In this document: positions 6,001-28,069 of the stretch, piece by piece | Position numbering within the stretch: the first letter of the stretch is position 1 | Layout of the letters: the number at the start of each line of letters is the position of its first letter | Origin: Botryllus schlosseri | Lineage: Eukaryota | Reading direction: 5' to 3' | Assembly (NCBI GenBank): GCA_051294905.1 | Contig: CM119384.1 | Location: forward strand, 11,222,001 to 11,286,000 | Length of the DNA: 64,000 nt | Made by a program: the position numbers and the translations under genes | The notes under the pieces: model-generated | The model's input: the letters and a program-made list of their open reading frames with translations, nothing else | What the model was told of the DNA's origin: nothing | The model's database searches: none

Positions 6001-7357
6001 AGTAATTTCATTCCTTGACAATTGCAAGATATATTTTGAAATCAGGCATATTGTTGTCTACGGCATTATCTTCCATTCATAGAAATCATAACCAATCGCA
6101 CTGACCACTGTAACCGCCCTATTACTTCAAAGAAATAGCACTTACGATTTTACTGCACGGTATGGCTCCTTCTCTCAACCATCCAATGTGTGTCATACTG
6201 TGCCCGTTCAGGCAGCCTCTCACCATCTCGTAATACTCCGCATCCAGTTCATACATTGGAAACATGGCAAGAGTGCTTCCGCTGGCAGTGTCGCCCTCCG
6301 TCGCGAAAGACACGAAGAGTACATCAGGATTAGGAGATCCAACAGAAATATCGATTCCGAGCTCGTTTTGCAATAGGCTGCCGACTTTCGCAGTGGTCGA
6401 GGTTATCACTCGTGTCAATAACGACTCTCTTCCATTAACCCACGTACGGGAAGCAATCGGAATTTCCAGGTACGAATTGGTCGTCGATTTTTCGTCTGTG
6501 CCTCTCATGCAGACCTGCGAGACGTACGACTTGACTTTATTTTTATTGACACGGTCGGCGATCTGCGGATATGAAATCACGAAATATCCAGTTTTGTCAC
6601 CGTCGAACGCGCTGACGAAATTGACTCGAAACTTTTCGTCTTTTGTCTTGGACGACAAGTCTTTTCTGGTTAAATGACTCGTGGTCTGTTTAGACGTCAG
6701 CTCTGAAGACAACATCGTCGGATCTTTGTTTCTTCGCGGCATTCTTCTGCTGGTGATCGTCGGAAACGACTCGTCATCTGAGATTACTTTGGTATCGTGT
6801 TCAGTCCTAGATGATCCGACATACAGCGATCTTTCTCGTCCCGCTCTACCTTCAAGAGCCATGAACGCGACTGTCGTCTGGTCAGGTAACATGCTTGCCA
6901 CAAAATCGTTGGCGCGGGGATCATTGGCAGGAGGAAATTCGTTTAAAACATGCGTGACATTACCGAGCTGCCTTAAATCGCAAATGCCTTGTTTGATGCT
7001 CCCGCAGGCCACGAGTCGGTCGTTATCGGAGTCTATTATTAGCAGCTTATTGTAGTTATTTGTATTTTCCGTTAAATAGTTACAAACTGAGTGCGGGTAG
7101 CATTCCGGACTATCCAATTTCGGGCCTGTTTCAGCCGTTTTCTCCGGTCTTAAATCCTGTCGAAGTTGATAGATCCTGTTCATGCCTCCGACGTATAACC
7201 GGTCATTTCCGACATCAAACTCCATGTGTTGGAAACTGCATAGCACGTCGCCGCATACTTCGGCGTAAAAATGCCTTTGCTCAATTGCACTAATTTGTTC
7301 CAGGCGATACGCCGAAAGAAGTAAAATTTGCCACCAGTATCGCAATGACGGGCACAT
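1..7357 (-). CDS. PLXN: Plexin, 5' part (signal peptide, Sema domain, PSI, start of first TIG/IPT); the gene continues beyond the left edge
   Basis: Exons 7357-6146, 5113-4922, 4170-3890, 3564-3441 and 80-<1, all GT-AG and phase-consistent (0,0,2,0). Motifs: LVACGSIKQGICDLRQL (Sema), VTSVAV...[39 protein letters not shown] (PSI), IKVDIANIPNAIGGSYWCDFG (plexin-type TIG start). Subclass (A/B/D) not resolved. Confidence 0.93.
222..736 (+). mobile_element. Non-autonomous hAT-type MITE, family A, copy 1 (in a plexin intron)
   Basis: 12-bp TIR TAGGGCTGGGCA/TGCCCAGCCCTA; perfect 8-bp TSD ATCGTGGG (214-221, 737-744); homologous to 29260-29626 and 31373-31889. Confidence 0.93.
3582..3642 (+). ncRNA. 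Degenerate solo hammerhead/pseudo-LTR relic of a Penelope-like element
   Basis: GATTACCCGCC-CTCACGA-G-TGTCAGC-C-GAAA-ATAT-TT-GGGT-TCATTTCA. Same layout as the hammerhead at 29871-29905, but the core is CTCACGA instead of CUGANGA and stem I carries an insertion. Confidence 0.65.
6146..7357 (-). CDS. PLXN: Plexin first coding exon (1212 nt; signal peptide plus most of the Sema domain)
   Basis: ORF 6122..7357 cut at donor AAAATC|gtaagt (6146/6145). N-terminus MCPSLRYWWQILLLSAYRLEQISA is signal-like. Confidence 0.93.
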
Positions 7358-9636
7358 GGCACTCGTTTGGTCGCGTTACACCGCTGATAAGACGGCACTA
7401 TGCAGACAGCATGCTGATTTCGTAAATTATAAAAGCGTTCAAAAGGCAACCATTTCTGAATTATTAAAATACATTCTAAGGTTAGTAAATCTTGACAGGG
7501 TTGTCTTATAAATAATACTTGCAATAAAGCTGCTACTAATTGTATAACTAGAACATGCTGTAATATCATGTTAGCCAACTCTTGGCAAGTGCACTAGCAT
7601 TGCCAGTATGGAATCAGTGCCTCGTGCACACCAAAGATTCTACTTGCTGCACACACGGCGTGATACTGGGAACCGTCTTGGCACACAATAAATATATTGC
7701 GTTAAACATACTGGGATTTTAACCTGATCATTGTTATACACATTGACATTGCACACAAACACACATGATACAAGGAATTGAGAATAATGCCATATTCATG
7801 ACAAAATGCCACAGAGCAGGAGTCCTTCCAATAATATCTAGAGCTAGTCAAGGACTATTAACATGACCTGGTTTTGTATTTCAACCAAAACCAATTGATA
7901 GGCCAATACTGGTATTTGCATTGTATAGTTAATTTTGATGGACGCCCGGCGGCAAAATTACAAGATTTTAACTTGAAAATACATTACTTTGATTGGGAAG
8001 TTGGGATTTACAGTAACTTCGCCGTAAGTAGGATTGCAGTCTCAGCCTTGAACAAATTTGATAACTGTAGTAAGGTAGCAATCTACATACCGTATGGCGT
8101 ATTGTAGTGTCCATGCTATAATCTTCAACACTCCGTGTTGTAAACAACTTAAAACCGTAGTTCGGGAAATAGCACACTCAGTTATTTACCGCTATAGCCA
8201 ACCTCACAGATTTGTCGGTTTCCACTTATTCCAAAGCTATTCGGTTCATGTAGACGTTAATGTATATACTGCAGTCGCATCTCGCAGTGCAATCGGTACA
8301 CCAGGTTATTTACGTTTTTAATAACGATCTTCGTCGTTTCAACGCTTTTTTATCTTGCCGGAAGAAATATTGCGATAGTTAAACGTAATAATACAATTTC
8401 TTCATTATCGGAACACTTCAATAACAGATACTTCCCTCCCTGGTTTTAGCGCACGCAGCCTAACAACTCCATCTATGAAGTCATGGCCCCAGCAGGCACT
8501 AAATTACATATGGCCTGCTACATTCCTTCGTAAATAACACTGCGAACTCTAGCGACCAAACATTAAAAAAAAAACTTACCAGTGGCCACCGATCCACGGA
8601 CCACATTCACGGACTTTATATCTAAATCTCAAATCGTTGGTCGATTATTTTCTGGAAGTTAGCTACTTATCCGCTTCGGATCATGAATATCCAAAGATGA
8701 ACATACAGATTTATACTTATACATGCTTGGGTTGCCATACTTTCGGATTTTGTTGCTAAAATAGGCGTCCTGGATGTATGATTATATGGTCAGGAAACTC
8801 CCTTTCGTACTCTGAGATTGTATAATTTTTCCGACACTTTTACTGGTCGCGAACATTTACTTCCCATAGTAACTGCCAGCTCTATTTTTTGGAACTTGCT
8901 TATTACATCAGTGGTCACTGGTCAAGTAGCATTCAGTCCGTGATATGTATTTGTATATCATTGCATGGCATCTCAGATATCGCTGCTGCTACTCTACAAG
9001 AACTCAGGAAGGTAGTACGGTGTATTATTGATTGAAGACGCCATGTCGTATCGACTCCTCTACGTTTTCATTGTATCATATTCTTGTGGTGTTTGATCTG
9101 ATGAAATTCGTAGTATAATCTGAGATAAACAAGGATGCTGGATGATAAATTTCCAAGCACAATGCATTGTGTGGAACTAGATTACGAGCACGTTCCTTTC
9201 ATCTTTCAGAACCTATTGCGAGATTGCTTCCGAGTCCGACTGATGGCTCTGAGCCATGTGACGATGTGTATAATATCACTGCTCTGAGCTGACTATAGAT
9301 TATTATAACCTCCGTAATCCAAGCTCTGAATCTCATTCTAACTCGGATTAAGATGAAGATATTGTATGACGTCACAATGTAGCTGATAAATATGATATCT
9401 TGAAGAAAATTCTCAAACGGGGTTTTCACTAACGATGAGTTTGAATATGACACAAAATGGAAATCTCGTGTGGAGCGGATTCGCGGGTAAAGGCTTGAAA
9501 AGATACGCACGCTATGCTGCTAATTTCATACTATCCTGAAATTAGTCACATATGATATTAACAACAAAAGTGTGCAGGACAGCTTGCATATCTAGGATAG
9601 TCCAGCGACCTTGAAACGGATAACACGTGAAAGAAT

Positions 9637-12600
9637 ATGAAAGAATCGCAAATTTCTGGTGAATATGATTATTTCGTGGAAGAAACCAGTTCCGATCGGA
9701 CAACCGAAGATACAGCGTCTTCATCTGTGAGTGATAAAAGCACTTGCACGGACACTAGCAGTGTTTGTGAAGGGGCGTCTTTAGTTAACTCACACGACAG
9801 CCCATCTGATAGCGCTGATCATGTTTCTTGGGAGGCTGACACTGCAAATGGTCATGCCCAGTCAACAACCTCGCAGTTACGGGCAAGTTTAGCCTCGAAG
9901 TCAAAAGCTAGCAGACATTCAAAAGAAGTTAGGAGGCAAATTGGAATTAAAGATAGATTAATGCAAAGAACATTCGATCGAGTTTCAACAAATCGCGAAG
10001 GATTGCATCGCGGCTCGGAAGAAAAGTGTGTAGAACCTAGAAAACAGTTTGCAGCTAGGTCCAAACGCATACTCAAAGATTTCGGCTTGGACAAGAAACG
10101 AGAGTTTCGCGATCGCATCAACCTCTCGTTAGCTGCATCTGGCAGAGCTTCGAAATCTTCGCGTGAGCGCGTACGAACGTCAGGCGGTCCTCGTGCGCCA
10201 GCAAACGTCAAGTTTTCTCAGGTGAACGATTCTGCGGGGAAGATAAAGGCGGCGAAGTCAGACGTACAAATGCCGAAAGTTGTTCGTAAAACGAATTCTC
10301 GTTCGAGATACCCGCCAATTTCGGAACGAAAAGGGAAAATCGATAAACCCGGGAATGATTTGCGGCCGACGACTGATAAGAACACAACTAATAACGCGAA
10401 AGGAAAGCCGAGAAACGATCAATTCCGTCGAAGGAGGCTATCTGGGAGTACACCCGCCCAAGAGAACAACCAATCACATCGCAGGCGATCAGCGACGAGC
10501 CCAGGGTGAGTTGCGATTGATTTTTGGCCCATTCCGTTGAGTCACAAACTCGCAACGCTACTGAAAATCTAAAATAGTATGATTAATTTACAATTTCTTC
10601 TATATAGTATACCAGCAATGCTTTTTGACAAGCTTGAAAGTGGGCCGTCTGGTGTGCTGACGTGGAACTTAATTTGAGAATGATTTAGTAAATTCACAGG
10701 GTTGTAGTGACTTGAGTCACGATTTTCTGATGAATTGACTTGACTCTAGTCAAATTTTGAAAATACGGAAATGACTAGACTCGAGTCAATCTGCGTATTG
10801 ACTCGACTTGGACTCGATTCAGTGCGCATGACTCGAACTAACTCATATGACTCGAGACTCAGACGGCCAAGACCGATATTTCATTGTAATTTCAAAGAAT
10901 AGGCCTAGTAAAGTTAGGGTTACCATACGTCCTCTTTTAAGAGGATTTGTCCTCTTTTTTGACTTTTTTGAAAGTGTCCTCGGAGGACGCCCTTTTGTCC
11001 TCTTTTTTGAGATTTTGTCCTCTTTTTTGAAAATCTACGTCAGATTTAGAGCAAATTGCGAGTGATATGACGTAAATTAGCACAGAACTGACGCTCCGGC
11101 GGGTATTTCGGAGTGAAACGGTTATTTTAGCTCTGGGCGGAAAGATGACCTTCCTTTTTTTTTTTAGTCAACCGATCACAAAGTGGGAAAAATTCACCGG
11201 TTTTTGAGAATTCTTCTCCGGTTTTGCAAGTCTTAAATTTCTGAAAAAGTGTCCTCTTTTTAGATTTCCAAAATATGGTAATCCTAAGTAAAGTAAACGC
11301 ACTGTTGGGATCTCGTCTATTGGTACTGGTACTTGAAAATGCGACCAGAAACTGCTAAAGGTGATGGAACTTGGTATTTTATAAATGCAAACCATTCGAT
11401 ATCAAGAAACAGAGTTATGAAAAGTGGGTTTAACAAGACTTTTACGCGAAACCGAGCACTGAGCAGTCAGCACAATGACTTGGACTCGTACTCGAGTCAT
11501 CATACCATGACTCGGACTCGACTCGCTGCTCGCTGACTTGGACTCGGACTTGACTCGGTGGTGAATTGAAATTGACTCTCCACTTGACACGAGTCAAAAC
11601 TATAAAAGTGAAATTGTCTTATGACTTGGTTACAACCCTGTAAATTCGTATGGGTCAGTGGTCGGGAACCTATGACTCGCGAGCCATATATGGCTCTTTT
11701 GGGTATAAGATATGGCTATTTGCTAAATATTTATTTTTGTACTAAATTGATCAATATTGCAGCAACTTGTGGGCAAATTTTCATCACGGCCAGAATAATT
11801 ATTCTCGTGGTAGTATAAACATATCTTTGAAACTTGAAGACAATGCCGTCTTCAGGTCTTGGGGCCCAGACCACCTCTTTTTAAAATCCTCAAATTTAAG
11901 TTACTGTCGCGCCGTCGACCAGTATCACTCGTGAATTCTATATACCGGACTTGCGATACGTTGATTAATCAAAGAGCATAGCAGACATAGCGACGCCCAT
12001 ATCCAACGTTCTTTTCAAATACACATTGCCTTACTGATCTACGGCTCGAAATGTAGGCCTACTCAGCACCGCAACTGCCGCACCCCGAACCCCCCAATTG
12101 GGGGGCCCAAAATTATTTCGTGAATTAGCATAAATCATAGAGTATTTTTCAAAATTTGTGCAATCTTCCAACATTTTTTCGCGCTGCGCGCGAATTCAAG
12201 TATCCATTTATCTTTATTATTGGGTATTGGGCCATTACCGCGCCACGACCCACCAAGACATACAATCAAGTTTTAGGCCATATTACATGCGACTCCAAGA
12301 AGTGTGCTAGAACGATCGGCAGCGAGAAAGCCTTGGCCGAAAGGGTCTATGCCCTTATGCTGACCAAAGACTTCGTTATATATACAAAATACATATAGGT
12401 TTAATTGTCCATAGGCGCCTAAATGACTGGCGCCGAATGCTCCTGTCTTTGCAATCTGAACCTCACAAGACAAATACCATCCCGCTGGGAAAAATTTTAT
12501 GCCAGTGAAGAAATACTAATTTGAAATCGTCTGCGTCTCTTAGTTTAGAAGCGTACGTTTGGGCGATTCTATATTTTTGATATAGCATACTGATGGAAGT

Positions 12601-15600
12601 CACGAAATAACATCATGTAACGAAGTCATATAAACGGGTCCGCCCGCCCGAAGATGTTTAATTACTATTTACGGGCCCTCCCGTTTTCAAGACACTTCAC
12701 TCAGCTCTACCGGTAAATCTAATTACGTGAGAAGAGAGGACAATAAATTGATAGCATAATATATGCAATAGCCGATCTGATTGACCGATTTTATCATAAA
12801 TTATCGAAAATTTTCACGCTTCACGCTGGCTCACAATCCAGTACAGATGATTTCGTGACAAACGCGAACAACGTGATGGAGGGGTCGTTTCATCACCATA
12901 TGGGAGCCCAAGACCCACCTTTTTGGGGGCCTGACGAGGTGCTGTTTCGTTCCTGCCAACGGGTATACGCCCGAAGATGTTTAATTATTATTGAGTGGTC
13001 CCACCTTTTCAAACACACCTCACTCAGCTCAATCGGCAAATCTGATAACGTGAGCAGAGAGAAGATCAAGATTGATAACAATATATATGCAATTCCCGAT
13101 CATACTGACCGATTCAGTAATGAATTCTAGCAATTTCTCGCGCTTCGCACGCTTAGGCGGCAAAAGCTGATTCACTAAACGAACTCCCCACGCATATGAT
13201 AAATAGCGGTAAACAGGGTATCGCCCGAGGGGGGTCTGGTGAGCGAAGCCCCCCAGAAGTTCGGTTTATAACCCCATGGGGGGCCCACGACCAAAGTTTT
13301 TTGGGGGGGCCTGACGAAGTGCTGTTACGGCCCTGGGCCTACTGCTGTGGACGTGACATTCACAATTACAAACTCGAATAACAAACAACGCTATAGCTAT
13401 CCACGTTTTTGATGGGTAAGTAGCTCTGTATAGTCCCGGCGATAAAATGTATGCGTGTAGCGCAACGTTATGTTACCGCCGAATACTTTGAGAACTGAGA
13501 AGTCAATTAGTATTTAGATTTTCGGAATCAGTGTGTCATTTACATTCGATTATTATCAGATCTCATAAATTTTAAGCTATTTACGATGAATTGCGTTATC
13601 AATGGTGAGGCTTGGCCCGTCTGTGTCTTACTTCTCGTTTCGAGCTTTATGTTCGAACAATAGTGAGTTCGAATTAGTGCTACAATGACGTCAGTTGACA
13701 GTTGATTGGCATGTGTGGCTCTCCCGGAGTTAAAATTAATTATCCTAAAATTAATGCCAATGCCCATTAGCCTACTTAGGAGACAAATCTACACCTCGAG
13801 TTCGATACGAAGTTGGAGTAATTGTGAAAAACAAAGTTAGTCTCGCGCCTGCAAGTAATATCATAATTTGCTGTACCTAACATCGCACGACTTGAAATGT
13901 CTGATTGCACAATGGGTTGATCATTCATGGGAAAGTTAGACAATGCAGTTTTCAAATTCATATCGTTATCCTAATCATTGGCTCGTAATGGAAGCTACAG
14001 CCAACCATAATCCCAATTATTAGGCAGCTTGTTCGCACTGTCGGTAAAATGTAGGCTTATAGAGCAACGTTTACCGTCGAGGAATTTAAGAGATGAGTAG
14101 AAAAATTGGCCAAATGATATCCCCATAATGTCATATATATATCTATACTTCAATCTAATATTTGCAGATGTAGTCGGCAGCGTGATATTTAGTAGCCCTA
14201 TTCTGTATCGTGTCCATTCCAGAGTTTCTCTTCCATCGCCAGAGATCATCGAAACATACCCCGGCGGACGACTGGCATACATGATGCACGCCCCGATACG
14301 ACAGCAGGCCAACGCACTGAACCTGAAAAACGGGAAAGTGATCATGATTTCGAAATCCGACGACCACCTGACCGCGACGGATCGGCCCGCTTGTCGCGAA
14401 GTCAAATCCACAAGACATCTCAGTAAGGAGAATACCTCCGACCCTACAGCATTTTCTATTTTATTAAAGCCTGTTTGCAATTTCTTGAAGAGGTCGACGT
14501 CAGAGAGGGAACGCCACGTCCTCCTGAGATGAAGTTGTCGGAAGGAGCTGTGACGATTCAGGAGAGAGCAAAAAGCCTGCAGAAAGAAATCAAAAAGATG
14601 AGAGGAGAAACGGAGCTAGCTGCTTTCAACGCAAGCAGTGACACAAAAATCGCTAAGGTAACCGTGGTATGTAATATTCTCGATTTATCCGAGTCAAATT
14701 TCAGCGACTGAAATATTGTTTGGGAAAATGCTATGGATTATTGTAGATTGCAATTATGATCGTGAAACCAGATTAATGACGCATATAGATTCTATTTTCT
14801 ATAGGGTAATCTCACATTCATTCGAATATTCAATTTTTAATATTGCGCCGTGTTCGTATGTTTTAGGAGTTTCATTGATATAGTATGATTCTTTTCATAT
14901 ATGAAAATCTGATAAAGAGTTCATTCGGTTACCTAATGACATTCAAAAACTTTATGGAATGATTATCTGGTTTGATGCCAAATCTCGGCGATTTGATACT
15001 TTCACCAAATTCCATAGTCATCTTATATGACCTTGCGTATAGTTGCTAAACGCACAATTGATACAAACAGATTTAAAATTAATATGTAATTATGGCTGTC
15101 TTCGGGCTTAGATCCCTTATTATAATTGTATAGTTTGAGATGAGGCGTGTAGTATATATTCAGGGAGTTCAAAATAACATGAAAACATGTTTACGCTAAC
15201 CGCCATCAAACCTTGCAAGGTTGCATTTAAAGGAAATAGCGCGTTTTAAAACCAACCCAGAGCAAAAGCCTTTGAAAAAATTGGTGCCAGGTCGGCGAAC
15301 ACGCCATCAACTGCCAATTCCTGAAATTGCGTCAACTGTAGGTTCATTAAAGTTCTTGATAATCTTGTTGTAATTAATAAAATACATATATTTTACATAC
15401 GGGTACGCACATCGCAAGAAAATAACAACTTGAAATCGAGGCATGGTAGCCTATTGCGCAAGATATTATCATCTTAGATAAGCCACATGTTAAAATTTTC
15501 TATTTTTGCTTCAAAGATTGGTCGAAACAGATGGAATTTTAATTCAGAAAAAACACCACGATCCAGCTAGGAGGATGTCTTTCATGAGGGCATTGAAAGA

Positions 15601-18600
15601 GGGCGATCATAGGAGAAATCTTCTGCGAAAAGGTTTCATGACGACCGTCGGAAAGGTCGTTCCAAAGGATCATTCCATTGTACTGATTGGACAAGCTCAG
15701 ATGAAAAATGGAGAACGAGTGTAAGTCCCAGCATGTCAACCTATTTGTTTCATTTGTCCGTTTATGATTCACAATGCGCAGACAATGGGCCGTCTACAAT
15801 GGTAGGCCTATAAAGTAGGCTACTAGCTGTAAAATAGCAAATGATAAGTTCACCGACAGTACAAAATCTACGATATAAACGAAAATTTTGACTTATTTTG
15901 ATGGTTCAAAAAAAATCGCCCTAGTTATGAGCAATTATATCGCCGTACGCTCTAATCACACGCGGGTTGTTGTCACATTCTGAGTGATGTGTAATCAGTA
16001 GGGCGATTATTTTTTACCTCAAAAGCGTAACATTTTGCACTAAAAAATCGAAATATTGACATTTTTTACATTATTAAATCTAATTTTGACAAAATTTGGC
16101 CTGCAAGTATTTGAATTAGGCATTGTTGCAAATAATGTTAGAATTGTAGTACTTTTCTACATTTCGAGTTGGAACTGTTTGCCCTTGCAGCTTGGCAAGA
16201 ATAGAGAAAAAACGTTCAATGGCAGCAAGTGTTTACTTTCAGCATTAAATGTCAGTGTATACTAGTACAGTGCTATAGTAACCTACGCCTGTTACTTCAT
16301 ACCGACTTTTTAACCTACTATAAATATCTCTCGTTTGTAGCTGTGCTAATCATCACGCCATGTCAACCTAATTGTTTCATTCGATCGTTTATGGTTCACA
16401 ATGAGTATACACAATGGACCATCCATAAAATTAGCCTATGCCTATAATTAAGGCTACAAGGTCTAAAATGATGAATGATGAGTTCACCGACAGTGCAACT
16501 TCTGCGACACCAACGAAATTCATTTGCTAAAATTTTATGGCTTTGTAAACAATTTTGTAAATTTTTTGACCCAACGCTACAATTTTGACAAAGTCTTGAC
16601 TTTTTTTGACATGTCAAAAAATAATCCCCCTATCAGATTACACGATGCAATTGTAGCAGCACGGTGGCTTGTTTTGCATCGGAAAAGTATACAATAAATT
16701 ATAAATACATCATGTGTAGAAACAAGAGGGAGATATATATTCCCATTTTCGCGTTCATGACACAGAATATCACCGTTTTATTTCAGAAAGACTGTAGTCC
16801 TCGGGACATTGCTTGTCGAAGAAAAGAACATTGGATCTGGAGACTCCATTTTGAAACTAGCAAAAAAGCAAAAGGATCTCATAACTGGAAAGGTTAGCTT
16901 ATCCTCGTTGCCTCAGAAGCGAAACCAAAAAGCGACTGGGAGCCTGTGGAAATCAAACGGGCTCGAAAATAACAAAGAGCCAGGCAGAGTAGGCGCAAAG
17001 GCCAACCAATCAAAGGAGCCTGACGCACGAAAAGACAATAAGTGGACTAATCCGTTTCGGTTAAATAAAGATTCCGATTTTTCGTCGGTAGAAAACAACT
17101 CGACCGCGTCACAAAACCGAAAAGATAAAGCAAGCAAACTACTGTTTCCATTTGGCCGTGATCATAAAACTACTCAGAATAATAAAGCGCCCGAGTCTAC
17201 ATTGTCCGGAGGCGGCACTCATACCGCGGCTAGCAAGATGAGCAGACCAACCACGCCAAAAGGACGGGAAAATGTCGCCGCTGGTAATACTCGGAAAGAG
17301 CCGACGAAAAAGGCTAGCGCGTCCGCGGTGGACAAAAAACGTCAAAATATTCGCGAGGAGTCGACTCTGCCGCCAATTCGAGAGAATGCGAGCCGCGGAA
17401 AAAACGCCCTTCCCAATCCCGCGGAAAAGGAGAGCGCTGGTAAAGACGACAAAAAAGGAAAGATCCACCGTTCCACATTTTTCCTGTTCATGGGGAAGTC
17501 AAAGAAACGGCAAGAGGAGAAGCAGATCGTCGAAGAAGAAATCGTAGAGAAAGTAGTCGATGTGCAACACGCAGAGGTAGTTCAACAAGACCAGTTTTCA
17601 GAAGATTCGGATATCGAAGCGGACGAATCAGTTTTGAAGACAGACGCCGGTCAAACGTTCACGATAGGAAGAGACGGTCGACCTCGGCAAGTCACGAAAG
17701 ATGGCAAAGTGTGCAGAAAGAATATCCTTTGGAGAGTTCCCAGCGGCCATGGAGCTCGCGATGCGAACTGCGGCCGAACTCTGCAGCGGAAAATGAAAGG
17801 CATTAGGCTTGATATACGCCGTACAACCGATGTCAGCTCTCAAAATTGGGCGAAAGGTAAATCACAAGTCGGGCTGAAAGCAAAGAAGTCCTCTTCTCGG
17901 AATCTCGCTCAGTCACGCAGTCTAGACATAATGTCTATAGATTCCGACCAAATGTCCGAGATACGTGACGCGTTGATGGGCGATCCGTATGCTTTCGAAG
18001 ACATGTCTGGTACGTTTCAAGCTCGCCGCGATAAGAATGGATTGTTATACCTTCGCGGGGATGCGAATCCCTACGATTACATCGCGTCCAGCAAGTCGGC
18101 GCATTCCTCCATGCTTCATCAGGCTCTCAGCGGGGTTTTATACATCGGCACGAGATTGCGCGGGGCTATCAAAAAGAGGAAACCCCCAACTCGTTCGCGA
18201 GATTATGAAGAAATATCAGGATCTAGAGTCGAAAGCAATCTGAAGTCCACTCCGCAGGAAACCGTGGAAGAAAGTCCATCTTCTTTCGATGAATTCAGTG
18301 ACAGCGATGATTCTGAAGCGGAATCCAATGAATCGGGCCCCTCTCACACATACGACGCGATAGAATCGACAGAACACTCTAGGCAGGAGGAACAAGAAAC
18401 GGATGCGAAAACGTCTGATATCCCTTCCTACGACTCCGTGCACACAGGCAGCCCGTCTTACGACTCTGTACACACGACCGATTCCTTTGAATCCTCATCA
18501 GAGGGTAAAAAGTCTACTCTTACGCCGTCTGTAGGTGTTCACGGTAAACTGTTTACAGCGGTCAAAAAATGTAGTTTACCCCCATCTGTTGGCATTCGAA

Positions 18601-21600
18601 TTTTACCTCCAGATCATAAGGTTCGAGATTACAGTGCTCAAATTGTGATTGGCCGAAGAGGACATACTGGAAAAAATCTTGAGCTTCCTCGAAGAAAAGT
18701 TATGTTCGTGCCTAATGCGGAAGCTCCTGTTACCAACAAAACGGTCAGGTTGTCCTCTTCGTGCGATACAATTTACAAGCCTAGACTCTGCGCAACACAA
18801 CTACGGCCTGTGGGAAAATACAGGAGAGGCATGAGATGTTTAACCAATAGACACCAGCGGCGCATCCCACCCCCGCCGCCTCGCGAATCTCAGTCATTTC
18901 ACTCATATTTCCTCACCGGAAACCTTCGACAAAGCAAAGCGTCCGAATATATCAGTAAATTTGGTGTCGACGGTTCCAATCATAGCATGGAAAAAACGGA
19001 ACCGTTCCAAAAATTTACCACCAGGCCCTCCAGGTCATCGAAACAGCGCGGACTGTCGAGACTCCGCGATTACAGTGACAAAGGTTGCGGGGACTCGGTT
19101 TACAGAGAAAGTGGTTCAAATCCATCCAGCAAAGGACTGAAAACGTCTTCGATATCTACTATGACGGGAAGCACCGTGTCCGGTGTTGTCACCGGATGGA
19201 CAGATCAGATTAAACCAATCGCTCCAAAAATCAGCGCTCGTACTTCATCGAGACCTCAGAAGAGTCACGGTAACAATCCGGGTATGGGTAGAATTACTAG
19301 CATAATTCGTGGATCTAGCAACGATGCGGATAGCTCCATCAGCACTCTACCCGATTCGTCAACGGACCAACCATCACGGTCTAGCAGTGTTTCTTCCGGC
19401 ACCACATATTCCCGACACTTGACTGCCACCTCTACTGCCATGGACGAATATTCCACAACCAATACCGAAAGTGATATTACAGAATCGTGCAATGGCAGTT
19501 CCGAACAACTCTCTATAATTCAAGGAGACATTGAACCCATAACAGAATTCAATGCGTCGCAAATTATTCCAAGAATGAATGGTTCTTCGAGTGATAATGA
19601 AGAGATGCTTTCCAGCGCTTCTAGTGTAAATAGCGGCGAGGAATTACTATCCGAAACCACTGACATTGATCAAGAATCCGCACCAGCTAACGTTGAGATA
19701 TCAGCCGACTATATCGAACATAGCAAAGTAAAAAGCACATTTTTACAACCGTCATGCAATTCGGAATTCTCGTCGAAAACCCCTCAGACTATGGATATGG
19801 ACAACCGTGTTGAAGAATACTCGGTCCCATCGAACTACGTGTCGGACGCCTCAATCCACAAACCGGATAGCTGGGTCGTTTCCGAGAACAGCACCAATGG
19901 AATACCCATGCCCGTTTTGGCGGACGAACGTTTGCATGACTTCAGCACTTCGAGCTCTGATCGCACCGAATCAGTTGATGAATGCAGCGCCGTGGCTACT
20001 GCCGGGTTGAAAAAACGCGGCCGGAAAGGCGCCAGGCCGATTCAGAAAATTAGACAGTTGCTCAAGTACCTGAGAGGAGATACTCTGATTTTTAAGGCGG
20101 TTACTGAAAGAAACAATATCACAATCGATGAAGATGTTAAATTACCGTCCGCAGAATGTTGCATGAAGGCCCAAATCAGCCCGTTCGATTTTAGTCGTAT
20201 TTACACCGGCAATTCTCCGAAGTGCGGGTGCATTAAGCGTTTCGAACCTTTCTTTGAGAAATTGTACGAACAAAATGCTTACGTTCCTTTAGCGAAGCGC
20301 ATCGTGGACCTCTCCATGTACGAAGGACTTGAAATACATGGGCAACTGCATCCCTTGTACACCGAAAAAGATGTCGATATTTTTTGTGATAAGTTAGCTT
20401 ATGAAGCGCTATCAAAAGGGGTCGCACAGTTTTCTGTATTACAGTCCCTCTCAAGCACATTGCTCGAAATCGAATCTGAAGATATGCTCGATGATATGAT
20501 GGTGACAGACGTGCAAGGCGTCGTAGAGGAAATGGTTGCTAATGTAATCACCGAGGAAGCTATGCAACAAGGCAGAAGGTCCTTGATAGTGCAATCCTTC
20601 ATCAACGATTCTGTCCCCAAAGTGTCAGCGAGAAAGAGTAATGATCCGAAGTTGAGGGCAATGTATCGCGTAGCCCTGAGAAATGCTGTGATTGAAGAAA
20701 TTGACGAATCGAAAAGCCTGCTTGTTACGCCGAAAGCGTCGACAGTTGCGTCTAATTTATCAGTCAACACAGACGTGTTGGAAGTCGCGAGTAAATCACT
20801 CGTAAATGGTGTACTCGCCACTTCAAACTCAAGATCCCTATCCCTGAAAAAAGAAATATCCAAGAGTCGGATGGTTTTAGCAGCATCAAAGACGTCATTA
20901 TCGCAGTCGCGTTCCAATATTTCTTCCGTGACAGCGACGAATGACTCGGCCCCTAATCCCTCATCAAGATGGGACGCAAAACCGCAAATTCCCGCATCCA
21001 AGCCTGGACACGACGATTCAATCGACATTACAGATTCTATTGAGGATAAATTCGACTGGATGACAGCGTGTATCGCGGATACTAGTGACCTAGAAACAAA
21101 TTACCAAAAACCTTTTCAGCACATGTGCGAGGCTGAAAAATATGATAACGGCATGGAAATGAAATCCAACAAAATAAGCGAATCAGAAGGAAATAAAAAA
21201 TCCACCGGTAATCATAATCCGCACATTGAGAATGTGGGAACTGAATCATTGTCACCACCGTGTGCTCCGTTCGAAATCCCTGACGGCAGTACGCTGAAGT
21301 CGAATGAAGTTGTTGAAGATACCAAACTAACTGGCGCCGCGAAATCCTCAGAAACTGAAGCAAAGATCTTCTCAAGTCACCGAGTTATCACTGTCACGCG
21401 ACCAAGTCCAACAGAACATCAGACAGATGTCATGACAAACGACGAACCAACAAATAGTGAGTTTAAGTCGGCTTTTATAATAATGCATTTTGTTAAAGAC
21501 TTGTTGTTGTTGTTGTTTATTAAACAGAAAAATTGGAAATGGAAAAATTGCGATCAATAGCACAACGAAGTAGAATCAAGTGAGATAAGGCGATTACTCA

Positions 21601-24600
21601 ACTTTACCAATTTACCAATTTCCATCAAATGATAGCACCTGTAATAAGGGTAAAACGAAACCTCGGACTTTATGCAGGAGATATATATGAGATCTAATCC
21701 AAAAAAGGAGGTGATTATATTCAAAATTTCACCTCACCGATCTTTAACGGACGTATAATTCCACATGAGCAGAGTTAAATTATATAATAATATCATGGAA
21801 TAGAACAATACTGATTTGAAGTGGGATACAAATTATTTTGAAAGTATGAATTTTTAATATATACATTCACGTTTGTTTGTTTATTTCAGCTGAGGTAAAA
21901 GATTCGGAACCGCTAACTCCACTGTCACGGACAGAAACCCATGGAAATTCCCCCCTTCCTTCGGATTTAAGCTGCGATAGGTTTGTGAAGAATTTATTTA
22001 GGCTTCTGTATTTCTCTCTGCTTTGTCATTGATGACAATTTCATATTAACATAATGCATAAGTCCAAGATGCAGGGATACTATAGGATGAGTACGTTAGT
22101 TAATGAGGTTGAGTAGCGTAAACTGATATTCATCGAGTTAGGTTTAATCAATTTATATGTTGTGAACAATGTTCGTACAACGTAATGTTTTGTACGGATA
22201 ATTCAGAATGCATATATTTAACCCGCACACAACAAAGATTATATTTTCAGAAAGACCGTGGACTTTGCGTCTAGTGTTGAAGGAAATGGGAATCTTATGA
22301 TAGCAAAATCTGTCGATATGATCGCGATTGCTGGAAATTCGTCATCTTCACTTCTGGCAACGGAGACGGAAGTTAAAGAAGTAGAAAACATCAACACCGG
22401 AGTATCTAAATCAACGAACCATGACATCTCAAAAACTGCTGACGTTAAGACCATCCCTCGAACAAGAAGCAATGTCGATAACAATAAGGAGCAATCGACT
22501 ACTTCTTCTGAAACAACGGTTTCTGCAAAGCCGTCTTCAAGAAAAAATAATAATGATGAAATTGGTGAGCGACCAACACCAATGGAAATAGCAACTAAAT
22601 CTGCGGGTACTTCAGAAGCCGTTCGAATCGGGACCGGGGTCGGTAAAGAGAGCAATAAAAACTGCGCGTCCGGATTCAAGTTCCATATTGGCTCAGCGAG
22701 AACTACTGAAAGAGCTCGCAGGAAATCATTTCCAGGAACCAGAATAGGACGTTTGACGCACATTGAAAATACAACAGGAACAGTCTTGAATCGCTCGAAT
22801 ATTCCGACGATTCAGCAGTCATCCGTGACTGATGCAAATAACAGCACTGCAGTTCCTGCCAGGCCCTGTGGCATTTTACAAGATTGGAAAGTACCGCCTA
22901 CGGTCAACGACAACAACGATGTATCGACTCCTGGATCCAGCTCATCGAGATTAATGAGTCACCACAAAGCATCGAAAATCAGCAGAACATGTGGTCACGC
23001 GAAAATATTCCTGTCTTGCATACAGTGTCGCCGGGCGATTTTCAAATCGTCAATAAGTCTCAGAAATCGCTCATCCGTTCGAAAACGATCACGACGCTTA
23101 AAAGAGAGAGGATACGTTAGCTACGATAAACCAAAGGGAAACGATGTTCGATACACCCACGGAGTGAACATCACTACACCCTTTCCATCGGGTGGCATAT
23201 TTCCCTGTAACGACATGCGTACTAACATCCATACTCATCATTCCCATTCAGACAGCATACCGCAATATAGTCCGTCCAGTATGGGTACCTCTGTCTACGA
23301 TGAATACGAATCGTCTCATAGGAGCTTGTCGAGTGGTTCTACAACTTCATGTAACTTCACGGGTGGTCAAGTTGTCATCGGCAGGACTAGTATGCAGAAA
23401 GATCTTTACATTGACCATATGAACTCGGGAAGATCGCCGATACAAATCGCCATGAAAAATCCCGCTCCGGGACCAAATATCCACTGCTTATACAGTGCCA
23501 CACCTTCCAACTTCCTAGACTGCGGGCAGAGAATCGTGATAGGTCGCGAAAATACACCCGACGATGTGTCGGCCCGGGGTGTTAAACGTGAAAAACCGTC
23601 GACGCACCCTTGCGGGTGTTCTAAACCCACCGGTAAATCGCCGAGAAGCGACTGCGAACTGGACGATGAGAAAATTGTGGAGAAAGTTCGCCGTATGTTC
23701 CGCTCGCACTCTCCGCGTTCGGGCGGGAAGAACTCCAACGTCAAGTTGTCACGTGACGGTACGGAAATTCAGGAGCACAGCAAAATCACGTGTATTGACA
23801 AAGCAGACGCTTCCGTACAAACTTCAGCACGGAAAGGATATGATTTTTCATCGGACAGGGAATCCACGGTGTCCTCGTCCGATGACCAAGAAGGATATGT
23901 GCAGTCGCCTAGTGCGCGAGGAGTCACGAAGAAAACTCGACCATTGCAATCCACGAGATCAACTTCAACAATCTCGAAATCATCGCGTGGGGAATGTTCG
24001 TCGTCATCTCGTAGCGCCGAGAGTCATTCTTCCAACTTTCAAACTCTTCCGAGGGTTGCAAATAAACCGAATTCTGTGCTGGATATCTTCGATGAGCTGA
24101 AACAAGAACTGAGCGAGCTCGGTTCGATCATCGACACTAGTAAAGTAAGGAAAAATCGTGACGCTGGAATTCTTGGCGACGCGATTCCGCGGCTAAATAT
24201 TCAAAGTGCAACTGAAATAGCCGCGTTGAATGATCCCGTCGCTGTCAGTAAGCAGTCACAAGGGAATTCAACACAGCAAGTAGATGAGCCCACCTCATCT
24301 CCGGTTTCTGATGTCGACACGCAAAATATCGAATCAAAATCTATTTCCAGTTGAGTAAAACCTTTCATTGTATTGTTCATAACACTTCGGTCTAGCCATT
24401 AAATCGCTATGTGTGCACTTGTGCAATGCATATAAATAGGTATAGATATAATACTGTCAAAGCTACATCTTCTCATTTGTTTCATAGAAAACCGGAAGAT
24501 CAGTTTCGCTGCCATGTTCGGCAAACCGCAGGTCACCTGCAAAGACGAGGTCGCTGGCAGTCGAACTCACGGTGAAATCGATTCCAAATCACATAACGTT

Positions 24601-27518
24601 GGAATCTCTGCGTCGAGGAATATGTTTGACGTATTGAAGCAAATACCGCTCGTATCTGGCACACCGTCTTCGACAAGGCGACGCAAATTATCGCAAATCG
24701 GTTAGTTACCCATCATCATTACAGCCAAGAGGCAGTGTAACTTCGTGATCAGTGTATACAACTTAATTAAATTACAAGCTTAAGTCTCTATTCATCCTTT
24801 GATTACATCCTTTCCTCTAATTTCTACGCACGTATCGTATCAGATTCATCCGATGACGGACCTCCTCCAAAAGTAATGTCCAGCTCTAGCGGACAAGAGC
24901 AGGAGAATATCTCGCGCAGAGGCATCAGCGTCGTCTCCTCCTCAAATATGTCGCGAAAGTCGAGCGTACAGGCAGGTGTTGATGCTAAACACCAACTGCC
25001 AGTAGCGGAGTTGAAAGAATACTTCGAAAAAGACAGATCGGCGCAACGAAAATCGGTACGCAAACTTACAGCAGGCCGAATTTCGCGGCATAATACTCTT
25101 CTACCTTAGCTAAGGCGACGTGTTAGTGTTGGTCTACCGAACCGCAGAGACAGCATTTCAAGGACGCCATCTAACGTGGACAAGAACGTGTCGCAAATCT
25201 CTCAACAGAAAAACGACAGAACGAAAAGCCTTCCCGCAGGAAAGCTGGTAAAGGTAAGCACCGGTAAATAAATTAACAGACTTCTCATTTGATATTGAAC
25301 TCTATCTGTCTCATAGATGAGCGCCGTATCACTTCAACAGAGTAATTCTGCGCCGCTTGGCAATGGAAATCAAAACCTTGTGCGGCAGTCGTTGAAATCC
25401 GACAATGGGGGATCGATGGTGATCGTCGGTGCAGAACGTAATAGAAAACAATCTATGAATACGTCAACCGACAGCGTCGTTGATGACGACAACGACGAGG
25501 ATGATAGCAGCTACGCATCTGCAACTCCTACAAATGGGGACAAAGAGCGTAAAAAGAGTTCAATCGTAAGAAATGAATTACCCGGACGCAGAAGATCAAA
25601 TCGCTCCCCTTCAGTGGACGAAAATGCCGCTAATGACCACGAGAAAACGAGGCGGAGCAGTTCAGTTAAATATCATGAAGAACCCTATCAGATCCAGGCC
25701 AATCGAGCTGATTCACTAGCGAGAAACGAAATACCGGGTCACATACAATCAAGATATGCCTCCTCGACTGGCAGAAACGAAAATCCCGACGGATTTCAAT
25801 TGAATTGCCTCATCACAGAAAACCAAATAACGACAGTCCAACTGAACAAAGTAAAGCAATCGGACCCACCTATCGTACTGCAAGATCACAGCAAACCGAG
25901 CCACTGTCGTGCAATCGCCGGAAACCAAATATGCAACCAGATTAATCCCAGGCGAAATAGCTCCATACCATGGTGCGAAGTACCAGACACCGTAACGAAA
26001 AGGCGTGATACCACAAGTGGACAGAATTATGTACCAATCGACGCCCAATATAGACGTAAGAGTTCAATCGCGAGGAATAAACCGTCCGATCATGCAGACC
26101 CGGCCAACGGAGGTTCACCAGACGAAATTGAAGAATTGGAACATTCAGGATCAAGGCGCAAGAGTTCGCTTCGACGGAGTGAACAAGTGAAACAAAGAAC
26201 CAAAAGCTCTATCGGTAGAAACGAGATACCAGATCATATTTTGTCAAAGCGAAAAAGTTCAGCTGGAAAAGGCGGGTCGCATTCGGAAACAAGGCGCAGC
26301 AGTTCGATTCGAAGGGGTGAACTAACAGATCACGCGAAACACAGAATCGATAGTTCGACTGGTGGAGATGATGAAACGGAGCACGTTTCGCCCAGGCGCA
26401 AAAGTTCAGCCGGAAGAAACGGTATACCCGATCATGTAAAATCACGACATCGCAGTTCGATGAATAACGGTGTATACTTCCCTGAGAAACACAGACGCAG
26501 TGGTTCAGTTGGCAGAGACGAAACGAGCCTTAATGCGCAAAGAACGCATTCCTCCATATCAAATAATTCAGCAGAAAGTAAGGAATCATTGTCGGAACCT
26601 GAAGAGATAAATCGCGCTGCATCGAGGCATAACTCCAGCGCGCGTGCTCGAGACAGCGAGATCACGACAGAAATCTCACAATCAACACTCGGCAACGCTG
26701 CTGCGACCGACTCCGATCAAACGGGTACGTCTGCTGGCCCCGAATCTACTGACTCGAGTATGAGTGAAGTAACGGAATGCGGCAAAACGAGACATCACCC
26801 GCACGTGAGTACCGGTAAAAGCTCGGCTACGTCACAATCGTCAGAATACACACAAGGCGGCGCTCCTTATCACAATAAGAGAACAAAAGGGAAAAAGGGC
26901 ACAAATAGACGCTTCATCGCGGCGAGCCAAATCGAGTCGTCTGCGGAATCCTCACTCTCCGATAATCCGACCCAACAGCCGCACTCAACCCGGAATAAAC
27001 GAAGAGCTAAGTCAGTTTCTTACAGTCGTGACATTACCGCCGGTCGATCCGTCGTAAGCAAGCCGTCAGGGAAGTCAGACACAGACACCACAAACAGCAG
27101 CAGTAACATTGTAGCGAAAGTATACGATATGGACGACATAGCCAGTCGATCGAGTAGAAAGTTGTCGGTTGTTCCGTCCGATTCTAAAAGAAAACGAAAG
27201 CACAGCCAACGCCTTCATGGCGGCCCCGAAACGGTGATCTGCAGTCAAACAAGCACTGACGAGTCCAGTGATTGCTTGGAATCCACGGAAACGGGGAAGA
27301 CGCAGAAAAGAGAGCGAAGTCGGAGGAGGTGTAAAAGGCGACGGTCGAAATGTGGAAATTCTTCATTTACGGACGCTTTGTGCAGTTTCTTTACTCTTCA
27401 CGACGATATTCGAATCGACGGTTTCGAGACTGTCATACGAATCGGAGCTTTGTTTATTATTGTAATGTATGCCATGCATGAGGAAATATTTAATTACGAC
27501 GGAAATTTTCCGACGTGA
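9637..27518 (+). CDS. Uncharacterised giant Ser/Arg/Lys-rich low-complexity protein (~3,760 aa, 14 predicted exons) with a C-terminal hydrophobic segment
   Basis: Phase-consistent GT-AG chain: 9637-10505, 10608-10651 (or -10639), 13560-13604, 13780-13854, 14168-14422, 14470-14657, 15548-15720, 16787-21456, 21890-21980, 22251-24349, 24488-24700, 24844-25055, 25110-25253, 25317-27518 (11,280 nt). In-frame stop just upstream of ATG 9637; AATAAA 10 nt after the stop. Exons from 14168 onward are well supported; the three small exons at 10.6-13.9 kb are less certain. Confidence 0.8.
10697..11640 (+). mobile_element. Non-autonomous hAT-type element, family B, containing a nested insertion
   Basis: TIR CAGGGTTGTA/TACAACCCTG; flanks TAAATTCA/TAAATTCG (7/8 TSD); dense subterminal GACTC/GAGTC arrays at both ends. 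Confidence 0.85.
10915..11286 (+). mobile_element. hAT-type MITE, family C, copy 1 (nested in family B)
   Basis: TIR TAGGGTTACCATA/TATGGTAATCCTA; perfect TSD AGTAAAGT; nearly identical to 35081-35547. Confidence 0.93.
12064..13335 (+). mobile_element. Non-autonomous hAT-type element, family E (1.27 kb, internal duplications)
   Basis: Perfect TSD GGCCTACT (12056-63, 13336-43). Right end GTTACGGCCCTG; left end a degenerate CAGCACCGCAAC; intact CAGGGCCGTAAC seen in the related copy at 41819. Internal ~190-bp diverged direct repeat (~12640-12830 vs ~12960-13150). Confidence 0.82.
15732..16522 (+). repeat. Diverged intronic direct repeat (~150 bp; copies at 15732-15885 and 16359-16522)
   Basis: Shared CATGTCAACCTA.TTGTTTCATT...CGTTTATG.TTCACAATG and GAT.AGTTCACCGACAGT.CAA blocks 627 bp apart. 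Confidence 0.75.
16787..21456 (+). CDS. 4,670-nt internal exon of the giant uncharacterised gene
   Basis: Lies within ORF 16809..21560; acceptor ttttatttcag| at 16786, donor |gtgagt at 21457; phases match both neighbours. Confidence 0.88.
22251..24349 (+). CDS. 2,099-nt internal exon of the giant uncharacterised gene
   Basis: ORF 22258..24354; acceptor atattttcag| at 22250. The donor gttgag at 24350 is weak but gives the phase needed by exon 24488. Confidence 0.82.
25317..27518 (+). CDS. Terminal exon of the giant gene: RRxS repeat array, hydrophobic tail and stop codon
   Basis: ORF of 733 aa preceded by acceptor tctgtctcatag| and followed by AATAAA at 27528-27533. Confidence 0.87.
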   Translation: MSAVSLQQSNSAPLGNGNQNLVRQSLKSDNGGSMVIVGAERNRKQSMNTSTDSVVDDDNDEDDSSYASATPTNGDKERKKSSIVRNELPGRRRSNRSPSVDENAANDHEKTRRSSSVKYHEEPYQIQANRADSLARNEIPGHIQSRYASSTGRNENPDGFQLNCLITENQITTVQLNKVKQSDPPIVLQDHSKPSHCRAIAGNQICNQINPRRNSSIPWCEVPDTVTKRRDTTSGQNYVPIDAQYRRKSSIARNKPSDHADPANGGSPDEIEELEHSGSRRKSSLRRSEQVKQRTKSSIGRNEIPDHILSKRKSSAGKGGSHSETRRSSSIRRGELTDHAKHRIDSSTGGDDETEHVSPRRKSSAGRNGIPDHVKSRHRSSMNNGVYFPEKHRRSGSVGRDETSLNAQRTHSSISNNSAESKESLSEPEEINRAASRHNSSARARDSEITTEISQSTLGNAAATDSDQTGTSAGPESTDSSMSEVTECGKTRHHPHVSTGKSSATSQSSEYTQGGAPYHNKRTKGKKGTNRRFIAASQIESSAESSLSDNPTQQPHSTRNKRRAKSVSYSRDITAGRSVVSKPSGKSDTDTTNSSSNIVAKVYDMDDIASRSSRKLSVVPSDSKRKRKHSQRLHGGPETVICSQTSTDESSDCLESTETGKTQKRERSRRRCKRRRSKCGNSSFTDALCSFFTLHDDIRIDGFETVIRIGALFIIVMYAMHEEIFNYDGNFPT

Positions 27519-27527
27519 CAAAATGTG

Positions 27528-27533
27528 AATAAA
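27528..27533 (+). promoter_or_regulatory. Polyadenylation signal of the giant gene
   Basis: AATAAA 10 nt downstream of TGA (27516-27518). Confidence 0.6.
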
Positions 27534-27588: not shown

Positions 27589-27905
27589 TAGGGTTGTCAT
27601 TCGTCCGAAATTTCCGGGATTTCACTGTTTATACTAAAATGTCCGGAATTTCGATGGCGTGAAGTAGTCTGAAAATTTTTTCGTACATCAACATGTCCGG
27701 AATTTCACTGATTAAACTGCGTCCGAAAGGAAATTCCAAAATATACTTGAATGTCCGGAATTTTGAAGACGTGAAGTAGGCTGAAACTTTTTTGGTACAT
27801 CAACATGTCCGGAATTTTACTGATTAAACTGCGTTCGAAAGGAAATTCCAAAATATACTTGAATGTCCGGAATTTTGAAGACGTGAAGTAGACTGAAAAA
27901 TTGTT
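27589..27905 (+). mobile_element. Left end of a TAGGGTTG(T/C)CAT-type (hAT-like) element with a 112-bp tandem repeat
   Basis: Starts TAGGGTTGTCATTCGTCCG; ATGTCCGGAATT-containing unit with 112-bp period (27641, 27753, 27865). A matching right end (GGACGTATGGCAACCCTA) ends at 37308 in another copy. Confidence 0.7.
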
Positions 27906-28069
27906 CGTAAGTCAACATAAACAGAATTTTAAACAGATTTATGCTACTTGAAATTTATTACTTCGCGCTGCGCTCGATTTAGTGTTCCATATATTAATAA
28001 AAATATGGAACCATACCACCCTCTCAAAAATACAATCAAAAATGAATAAAAACAGTATCATTTACTGAA

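Follow-up and report, generated by a model that had tools for sequence, protein, structure and literature searches.

We analysed a stretch of 64,000 nucleotides of the Botryllus schlosseri genome (GenBank assembly GCA_051294905.1, contig CM119384.1, positions 11,222,001 to 11,286,000 of the forward strand), which is called the window in the following and to which all nucleotide positions refer. Our analysis did reveal that the region 9637-27518 on the plus strand of this window is one transcribed gene with at least 11 coding exons, which encodes a protein of approximately 3,680 residues.

Gene structure and transcript support

Four very long open reading frames (ORFs) occupy the plus strand between 9.6 and 27.5 kb, namely 9631-10506, 16761-21557, 22222-24351 and 25317-27515. 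The largest of them comprises 1,599 codons, which for DNA of about 42% G+C is, by our own estimate, far past what chance would produce. Our gene model connects these frames through 11 coding exons with a total of 11,040 nt, corresponding to 3,679 codons and the stop codon (Table 1). According to a script check the exon chain forms one unbroken frame without any internal stop, from the ATG at 9637 to the stop codon at 27516-27518. Splice sites were read directly and checked by script, and all introns of the 11-exon model are bounded by GT and AG with the phase kept throughout. A first-pass annotation made from the sequence alone had already proposed a long continuous frame here. We recovered this frame from the ATG at 9637 to the stop at 27518, supported by RNA contigs for exons 1-4 and then by phase and collinearity with a protein of Styela clava. 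Its exon count of 14, with 11,280 nt and roughly 3,760 residues, differs from our model, and the three additional exons could not be reproduced.

RNA contigs and reads were compared with positions 9600-15599, the least certain part of the gene. Two Logan contig sets behaved as RNA, X1 (study P1) and X7 (study P4), and one contig in each of them (1,666 nt at a depth of 13.7 in X1, and 1,956 nt at a depth of 49.6 in X7) runs through 9600-10505, 14223-14422, 14491-14657 and from 15548 onward, with GT..AG at all joints. These contigs show zero depth on the unique intron stretches 13800-14200 and 14800-15400, and they extend 160-204 nt upstream of 9600. Within 9600-15720 the RNA contigs contain four exons only, which are coding exons 1-4 of Table 1. 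Because the contigs in X1 and X7 are spliced as modelled, the gene is transcribed and spliced and its first four exons are fixed. We rejected a direct join of exon 1 to 15517, initially suggested by the Styela match, in favour of the acceptor at 15548 that is seen in RNA. The junctions from 21456 onward were placed by splice consensus, phase and collinearity or homology instead of reads, and the donor at 24350 (CCA/GTTGAG) is weak. Introns of 54-68 nt can be considered normal for this gene because the 68-nt intron between 14422 and 14491 was seen in RNA.

Table 1. Coding exons and other features of the gene, and matches of its protein to Styela clava. Positions are those of the window unless residues are named.
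Feature	Position	Strand	Evidence and remarks
5' untranslated region or upstream exon	at least 160-204 nt further upstream of the exon 1 region	+	X1/X7 contigs
Coding exon 1	9637..10505	+	ATG 9637 after in-frame stop 9628-9630; X1/X7 contigs, joined to 14223
Coding exon 2	14223..14422	+	joints 10505>14223 and 14422>14491 in X1/X7; phase fits
Coding exon 3	14491..14657	+	joints 14422>14491 (68-nt intron) and 14657>15548 in X1/X7
Coding exon 4	15548..15720	+	acceptor in RNA contigs; carries conserved GFMTTVGKVVPKDHSIVLIG; Styela match spans exon 4/5 junction
Coding exon 5, giant, about 1,557 codons	16787..21456	+	open frame, splice sites, matches to relatives P0001-P0008
Central conserved helical module, about 150 residues	20220..20681	+	RFEPFF..PLAKRIV..PLYTE..DKLAYEAL..VQGVVEEMVANVITEEAMQQGRR; phmmer, alignment A1, AlphaFold2
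Coding exon 6 (inferred)	21890..21980	+	consensus acceptor and donor, consistent phase
Coding exon 7, large	22251..24349	+	open frame 22222-24351, relaxed tblastn Styela match, phase
Coding exon 8 (inferred)	24488..24700	+	splice sites, phase
Coding exon 9 (inferred)	24844..25055	+	splice sites, phase; carries QLPVAELKEYFE
Coding exon 10 (inferred)	25110..25253	+	splice sites, phase; RRxS cluster begins (RRRVS, RRDS)
Coding exon 11, last, 733 codons and stop	25317..27518	+	ORF; RRKSS-type repeats in 25317-26408
Predicted transmembrane tail anchor TVIRIGALFIIVMYAM	27429..27476	+	top hydrophobic 17-residue window; conserved in Styela, L016 and L017
Predicted luminal tail, 13 residues, HEEIFNYDGNFPT	27477..27515	+	very C-terminus; KASH-like by loose rules
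AATAAA, putative poly(A) signal	27528..27533	+	10 nt past stop codon, sequence read
Styela match 1	model residues 424-494, Styela 592-662		48.6% identity, E 1.9e-13; spans exon 4/5 junction with identical spacing
Styela match 2	model residues 711-948, Styela 770-1022		29.5% identity, E 5.1e-20
Styela match 3	model residues 1615-1743, Styela 1890-2019		45% identity, E 1.6e-36; central module
Styela match 4	model residues 3616-3679, Styela 3827-3888		44% identity, E 4.6e-9; reaches last residue

The X1 and X7 contigs differ from the window by single bases at 9654, 9815, 9829, 9878 and 10328 as well as 14338 (exons 1 and 2), which are most likely polymorphisms between individuals. Intron 1 (10600-13800) contains dense high-copy repeats that are strongly represented in all four runs, with a summed contig depth of up to about 10,000, reads that are 95-99% alike, and many loose ends. 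The raw bulk RNA run X19 has a poly(A) loose end at 11055, and hundreds of its reads start near 10925. This intron 1 signal suggests an expressed family resembling short interspersed nuclear elements or other transposable elements, and not the window gene. The two largest internal exons, at 16787 and 22251, have near-identical starts: the acceptor is followed by cag/AAAGACTGTAG in the first and by cag/AAAGACCGTGG in the second, and each encodes ..KTV... This resemblance may be chance or the trace of an internal duplication. Approximately 100 nt past the poly(A) signal a 112-bp unit is repeated 2.6 times (27630-27918, 90% matches) with a nested 58-bp period, and upstream of the gene an ORF of 411 codons without a Pfam match lies on the minus strand (6122-7357). 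Scans of the window returned no tRNA and no Rfam matches, and it contains no runs of N. Tandem repeats in the DNA were rejected as the source of the low complexity of the protein, since none with a score of at least 80 lies inside the exons.

Relatives and conserved islands

To find relatives of the protein, 1.84 billion cluster representatives were searched with phmmer, with the 365 residues that look best ordered (20004-21098) as query. Eight relatives were obtained with E values from 1e-98 to 2e-6, of which only two are named, 'uncharacterized protein LOC120327567' of Styela clava (XP_077970308, 3,888 residues) and 'uncharacterized protein LOC100180955' of Ciona intestinalis (XP_026693921, 3,075 residues). 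The others are nameless ORFs of 1,321-2,029 residues from Logan, ENA and JGI contigs, which represent single giant exons called on eukaryote contigs. Five other loci (L002, L012, L013, L014 and L015) show the same layout as the window, with a giant ORF and then two ORFs of about 930-1,130 codons downstream on the same strand. The eight relative clusters together with the shared layout imply that the gene is not the orphan it had been taken for. As only eight clusters were found in the 1.84-billion library, the family looks restricted to tunicate-type genomes. Three further homologue searches returned only P0001 or the query; the search was bound by shared words and length, so that these blanks mean little. 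A literature search found no paper naming the Styela and Ciona proteins or their accessions.

Collinear matches to the Styela protein are found in the window gene from 15.5 kb to its last codon (Table 1), and relaxed tblastn gave a weaker match between 22684-23700 in exon 7 and Styela residues 2609-2901 (E 1.3e-4). In an older Styela annotation the locus was split into two genes; the current model is a single protein that holds both the central module and the tail. Other sea squirts keep the same protein, in Styela, in Ciona and at several other loci, and it bears neither a name nor a known domain.

Nearly the whole chain (about 99%) forms an arm that is rich in Ser, Thr, Arg and Lys and for the most part disordered. 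The 3,679-residue model includes 14.7% Ser, 7.7% Arg, 7.4% Lys, 7.0% Thr and 0.3% Trp, and the charge-hydropathy boundary places 78.5% of its 60-residue windows on the disordered side. The longest stretch on the ordered side is the central region, residues 1551-1860. Pfam searches returned nothing above cut-off for all four large ORFs, the complete sequences of all eight relatives, the central module of each relative, and the C-terminal tails of four lineages. This is in good agreement with the first-pass annotation, which had described a composition dominated by S/T/R/K/D/E and had recognised no globular domain. The helical patch it had noticed (20391-20564) is likewise real, lies within the best-conserved part and belongs to the conserved central module of about 150 residues.

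An alignment of this module (A1) has 13 invariant columns. AlphaFold2 with a nine-sequence alignment predicted only long helices for the central region (query residues 85-114 and 121-203), with a predicted local distance difference test (pLDDT) score peaking at about 80 and a mean of 48.6, and no compact fold. A PDB profile search with alignment A1 gave no match at E <=10, and two ESM Atlas searches, one for the central module and one for the last 100 residues, yielded nothing usable. The second-best island (GFMTTVGKVVP.DHSIVLIG ... KTVVLGTL ... GSGDS) was modelled as a weak hairpin with a mean pLDDT of 41.2. The poor models and the empty PDB and ESM searches indicate that conservation sits in short islands. 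Exon 5 begins with one of these (VLGTL...GSGDS..TL, here KTVVLGTL...GSGDS) and also contains two IGR motifs, a KMKGIR helix motif belonging to the island L..KMK.IR..IR..TD...K.W, and the central helical module. Exon 7 contains three IGR motifs as well as ERGYVSY...TPFPSGGI / DDEKIVEKVRRMF, which is common to Styela. Motifs of the type phi-x-IGR-x-R are enriched in all eight relatives, and IGR occurs six times in the window protein compared to 0.93 expected from composition. The exon 9 motif QL.V.EL..YFE (QLPVAELKEYFE) is also found in Ciona (QLTVPLLREYFE) and in the small ORF of L002 (QLTVPELTGYFE). RRx[ST] sites number 16 versus 4.8 +/- 2.0 expected from composition, and RRKS 4 versus 0.3. 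They are concentrated at residues 2901-3310 in the form of RRKSS(I/L/A).RNE.P-like repeats, and Ciona has EDRRKSVVP repeats at the matching place.

The predicted C-terminal anchor and its possible partners

The last 29 residues of the protein are TVIRIGALFIIVMYAM-HEEIFNYDGNFPT, directly followed by the stop codon. The six top hydrophobic 17-residue windows all lie at residues 3646-3668, and no second candidate for a membrane segment was found in the chain. The N-terminus (MKESQISGEYDY) is hydrophilic. The protein thus has the features of a tail-anchored protein: one predicted transmembrane segment lies within about 40 residues of the C-terminus, and neither a signal peptide nor a further membrane segment was found. 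The C-terminal hydrophobic segment pointed out previously can be described as a tail anchor that is conserved together with its predicted luminal end. This anchor has only moderate hydrophobicity and includes an Arg.

The Styela protein ends in ...TTIRLLALAIILFYAI-HEEVFVVDGDFPT. By walking downstream we reached the terminal exons of two further, distant loci, in both cases on the same strand, which end in ...ICRVVAVCAIIYVLFFY-KPEGYGRRVPT (L016) and ...ICRAVAAGAILYFLL-HEPTDSVNYAPI (L017). The tail was recovered in all four lineages with a reachable 3' end; the ends of L012, L014 and L015 were not reached, and the Ciona model is seemingly cut inside the helix. Alignment of the four C-termini revealed an invariant Pro at the penultimate position and, within the helix, one Arg, one Ala and one Ile that do not vary. 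The tails measure 13 residues here and in Styela, 12 in L017 and 11 in L016, with the endings NFPT, DGDFPT, NYAPI and GRRVPT, respectively. The conservation of helix and end in four lineages indicates that the family is probably tail-anchored and has a predicted luminal tail of 11-13 residues, with [F/V/A]-P-[T/I] as its end.

We consider the protein to be, with good probability, a tail-anchored scaffold, in keeping with the first-pass view of a single real giant, mostly disordered and lineage-restricted-looking scaffold, which now has 5' exons spliced in RNA and a collinear protein of 3,888 residues in Styela on its side. In this reading the giant arm would be located in the cytosol and the short tail in the lumen of the endoplasmic reticulum (ER) or the perinuclear lumen. 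An invariant penultimate Pro and a T/I end at 11-13 residues from the membrane, in relatives that are about 25% identical elsewhere, are features for which SUN or a similar reader of free C-termini would select, and a different luminal reader of these ends is not known to us. We suggest tentatively, and at a little less than an even chance, that the conserved free end serves as a short KASH-like tail and docks a SUN protein. The end might insert into the pocket of the SUN domain in the manner of a short plant-like KASH tail, and this docking would hold the arm at the outer nuclear membrane, where partners could be recruited by the motifs and the helical module, and basophilic kinases might regulate them through the RRxS clusters.

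Under the DORY rules, a putative KASH is located directly C-terminal of the transmembrane domain, has a length of 9-40 residues and forms the protein's own C-terminus with a four-residue pattern, and its presence across family members raises its credibility (PMC4050730). The terminal patterns are [PATHQL]PP[QTVFILM] (PPPX) for animals and, for plants, a loose XXPT that was refined to [DTVAMPLIFY][VAPIL]PT (PMC4050730). The window tail is adjacent to the transmembrane segment, terminal and of a length within these bounds. It is present across the family, in each of the four lineages with a reachable 3' end, and the loose plant pattern XXPT occurs in three of these four. One SUN-domain gene of the genome, with a Sad1_UNC match that is divided between exons (C14:122365-123011), is taken to be of the SUN1/2 type, and a scan of the whole genome with the Pfam KASH model PF10541 detected one canonical KASH gene, which ends in ...YTNGPPPV, and did not pick up the window locus. 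With these two genes, parts of the LINC complex, which links nucleoskeleton to cytoskeleton, are present. The only single-exon SUN gene (L007 2750-5803, G000:C6, minus strand) encodes, in a single ORF of 1,017 codons, a SUCO/Slp1-like SUN-domain protein. The N-terminus of this protein is hydrophobic and signal-peptide-like, its SUN domain lies within the N-terminal third, and a hydrophobic segment is found close to the C-terminus.

A number of observations weigh against a SUN-docking scaffold. On the side of the gene, exons 6-11 have no read support, and the depth on exons 1-4 was zero in two raw bulk RNA runs (X15 and X19), which shows only that the 5' exons are not expressed in those samples. 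On the side of the tail, the refined plant pattern was found in none of the four lineages, since N/F, D/F and R/V each deviate from it at one position or at both, and L017 ends in PI instead of PT. None of the endings NFPT, DFPT, RVPT and YAPI conforms to the animal PPPX pattern, PF10541 gave no match at E <=10 for the tails of the four lineages, and hhalign of the tail alignment against the genome's own canonical KASH returned a probability of 1.4%. The charge of the tail is not conserved across lineages and ranges from -3 to +2. To our knowledge the tail is shorter than any animal KASH. Canonical KASH tails use a Cys for a disulfide to SUN, and the window tail is without a matching Cys. Because of the Pfam, PPPX and profile results we ruled out canonical KASH membership and do not file the tail as a member of the KASH family; it may only work like one. 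Kinship to IRAG/LRMP was rejected as well, as no MRVI1 match was among the Pfam results.

Alternatively, the tail anchor might hold the scaffold in the general ER membrane or in that of another organelle, without any link to SUN, and the luminal end would serve insertion, retention or a different luminal partner. This is a serious possibility, to which we would give rather less than even weight. The evidence for the topology applies identically, and the lack of sequence homology of the tail to KASH, its changing charge between lineages, and the moderate hydrophobicity of an anchor with an Arg speak for such a membrane scaffold. However, an invariant penultimate Pro followed by a terminal T/I at a fairly constant 11-13 residues from the membrane fits a SUN-like reader.

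A role as A-kinase anchoring protein (AKAP), which would be compatible with either membrane reading, appears improbable. The amphipathic helix VQGVVEEMVANVITEEAM of the central module would bind the docking domain of PKA RII and place PKA beside the RRxS sites. VQGVVEEMVANVITEEAM resembles known RII-binding helices, RRx[ST] is enriched about 3-fold, and the genome contains an intact PKA RII gene. The Pfam model RII_binding_1 (PF10522) weakly matches a second conserved helix in Styela (E 0.044, 14.5 bits); however, this score is below the cut-off of 18.8, no RII_binding match was found in the window protein, and alignment A1 shows that the hydrophobic pattern of the helix is lost in distant relatives. 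A complex prediction of two copies of the genome's own PKA RII docking domain with 20364-20618 scored 0.08 against a mark of 0.34 and counts neither way. The PKA RII gene itself (L009, G000:C12:5022579-5025686, minus strand) is one ORF of 417 codons with the docking domain, both cyclic nucleotide-binding (cNMP-binding) domains and the inhibitor site RRKSIS.

That the long frames are several separate genes, an annotation artefact or a decaying gene is very improbable: the junctions after 21456 without read evidence, the weak donor at 24350, the former split of the Styela locus and the two raw RNA runs without reads on the 5' exons would fit it, but exons 1-4 are spliced in RNA contigs, the Styela match spans the exon 4/5 junction, the current Styela model joins central module and tail collinear with the window, and phase is kept at all introns over 11,040 stop-free nucleotides.

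Significance and comparison with known systems

With eight clusters of relatives, the supposed orphan becomes a defined family, found so far only in sea-squirt-type genomes, which combines a giant-exon layout with a helical module, short conserved motifs and a tail anchor, and for which the gene model is partly RNA-supported. Few animal SUN-binding proteins are known to us, and all accepted ones carry a PPPX tail. With a conserved short phi-P-T tail attached to a giant, presumably cytosolic arm, the window protein is a candidate for a new class of SUN binders that can readily be tested. It might even be that sea squirts possess a new type of animal LINC protein, a giant disordered tether of the outer nuclear membrane with a minimal plant-like phi-P-T tail beside the normal nesprin-type KASH, although we regard this wider proposal as doubtful. 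If true, animal SUN proteins would also accept short non-PPPX tails, and the tail would provide a template to search for hidden KASH proteins in other animals. Should the tail not be a ligand of SUN, the family would nevertheless be a clear example of a protein longer than 3,500 residues, kept open for the sake of short motifs and an anchor and not of folded domains.

When compared to known proteins, the Styela and Ciona proteins are orthologue-like. Their conserved islands are collinear with those of the window protein and the Styela protein likewise ends in HEE.F..DG.FPT, whereas most of the chain is not alignable. AKAPs resemble the window protein as long disordered scaffolds with amphipathic helices and many basophilic-kinase sites, and differ from it in that the window protein has neither an RII_binding match above cut-off nor support from complex prediction.

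The animal KASH proteins (nesprins, Klarsicht, UNC-83, KASH5, LRMP/Jaw1; PF10541) differ from the window protein in their tail, which here lacks PPPX, has 13 residues compared to about 30 in the genome's own canonical KASH, and has no Pfam or profile match. They share with it a giant or largely unstructured cytosolic arm (as in Klarsicht), the tail anchor, acidic residues right after the membrane helix, and a Pro before the last residue. Plant KASH proteins (WIP1-3 and SINE1-4; PMC4050730) belong to another kingdom and have no sequence homology to the window protein, whose position -2 is Phe (Val or Ala in two relatives) and whose position -3 falls outside the refined pattern. In architecture, however, they are alike: both have a C-terminal membrane helix, a short terminal luminal tail with an x-phi-P-T end, family-wide conservation of this tail, and cytosolic parts without a shared domain.

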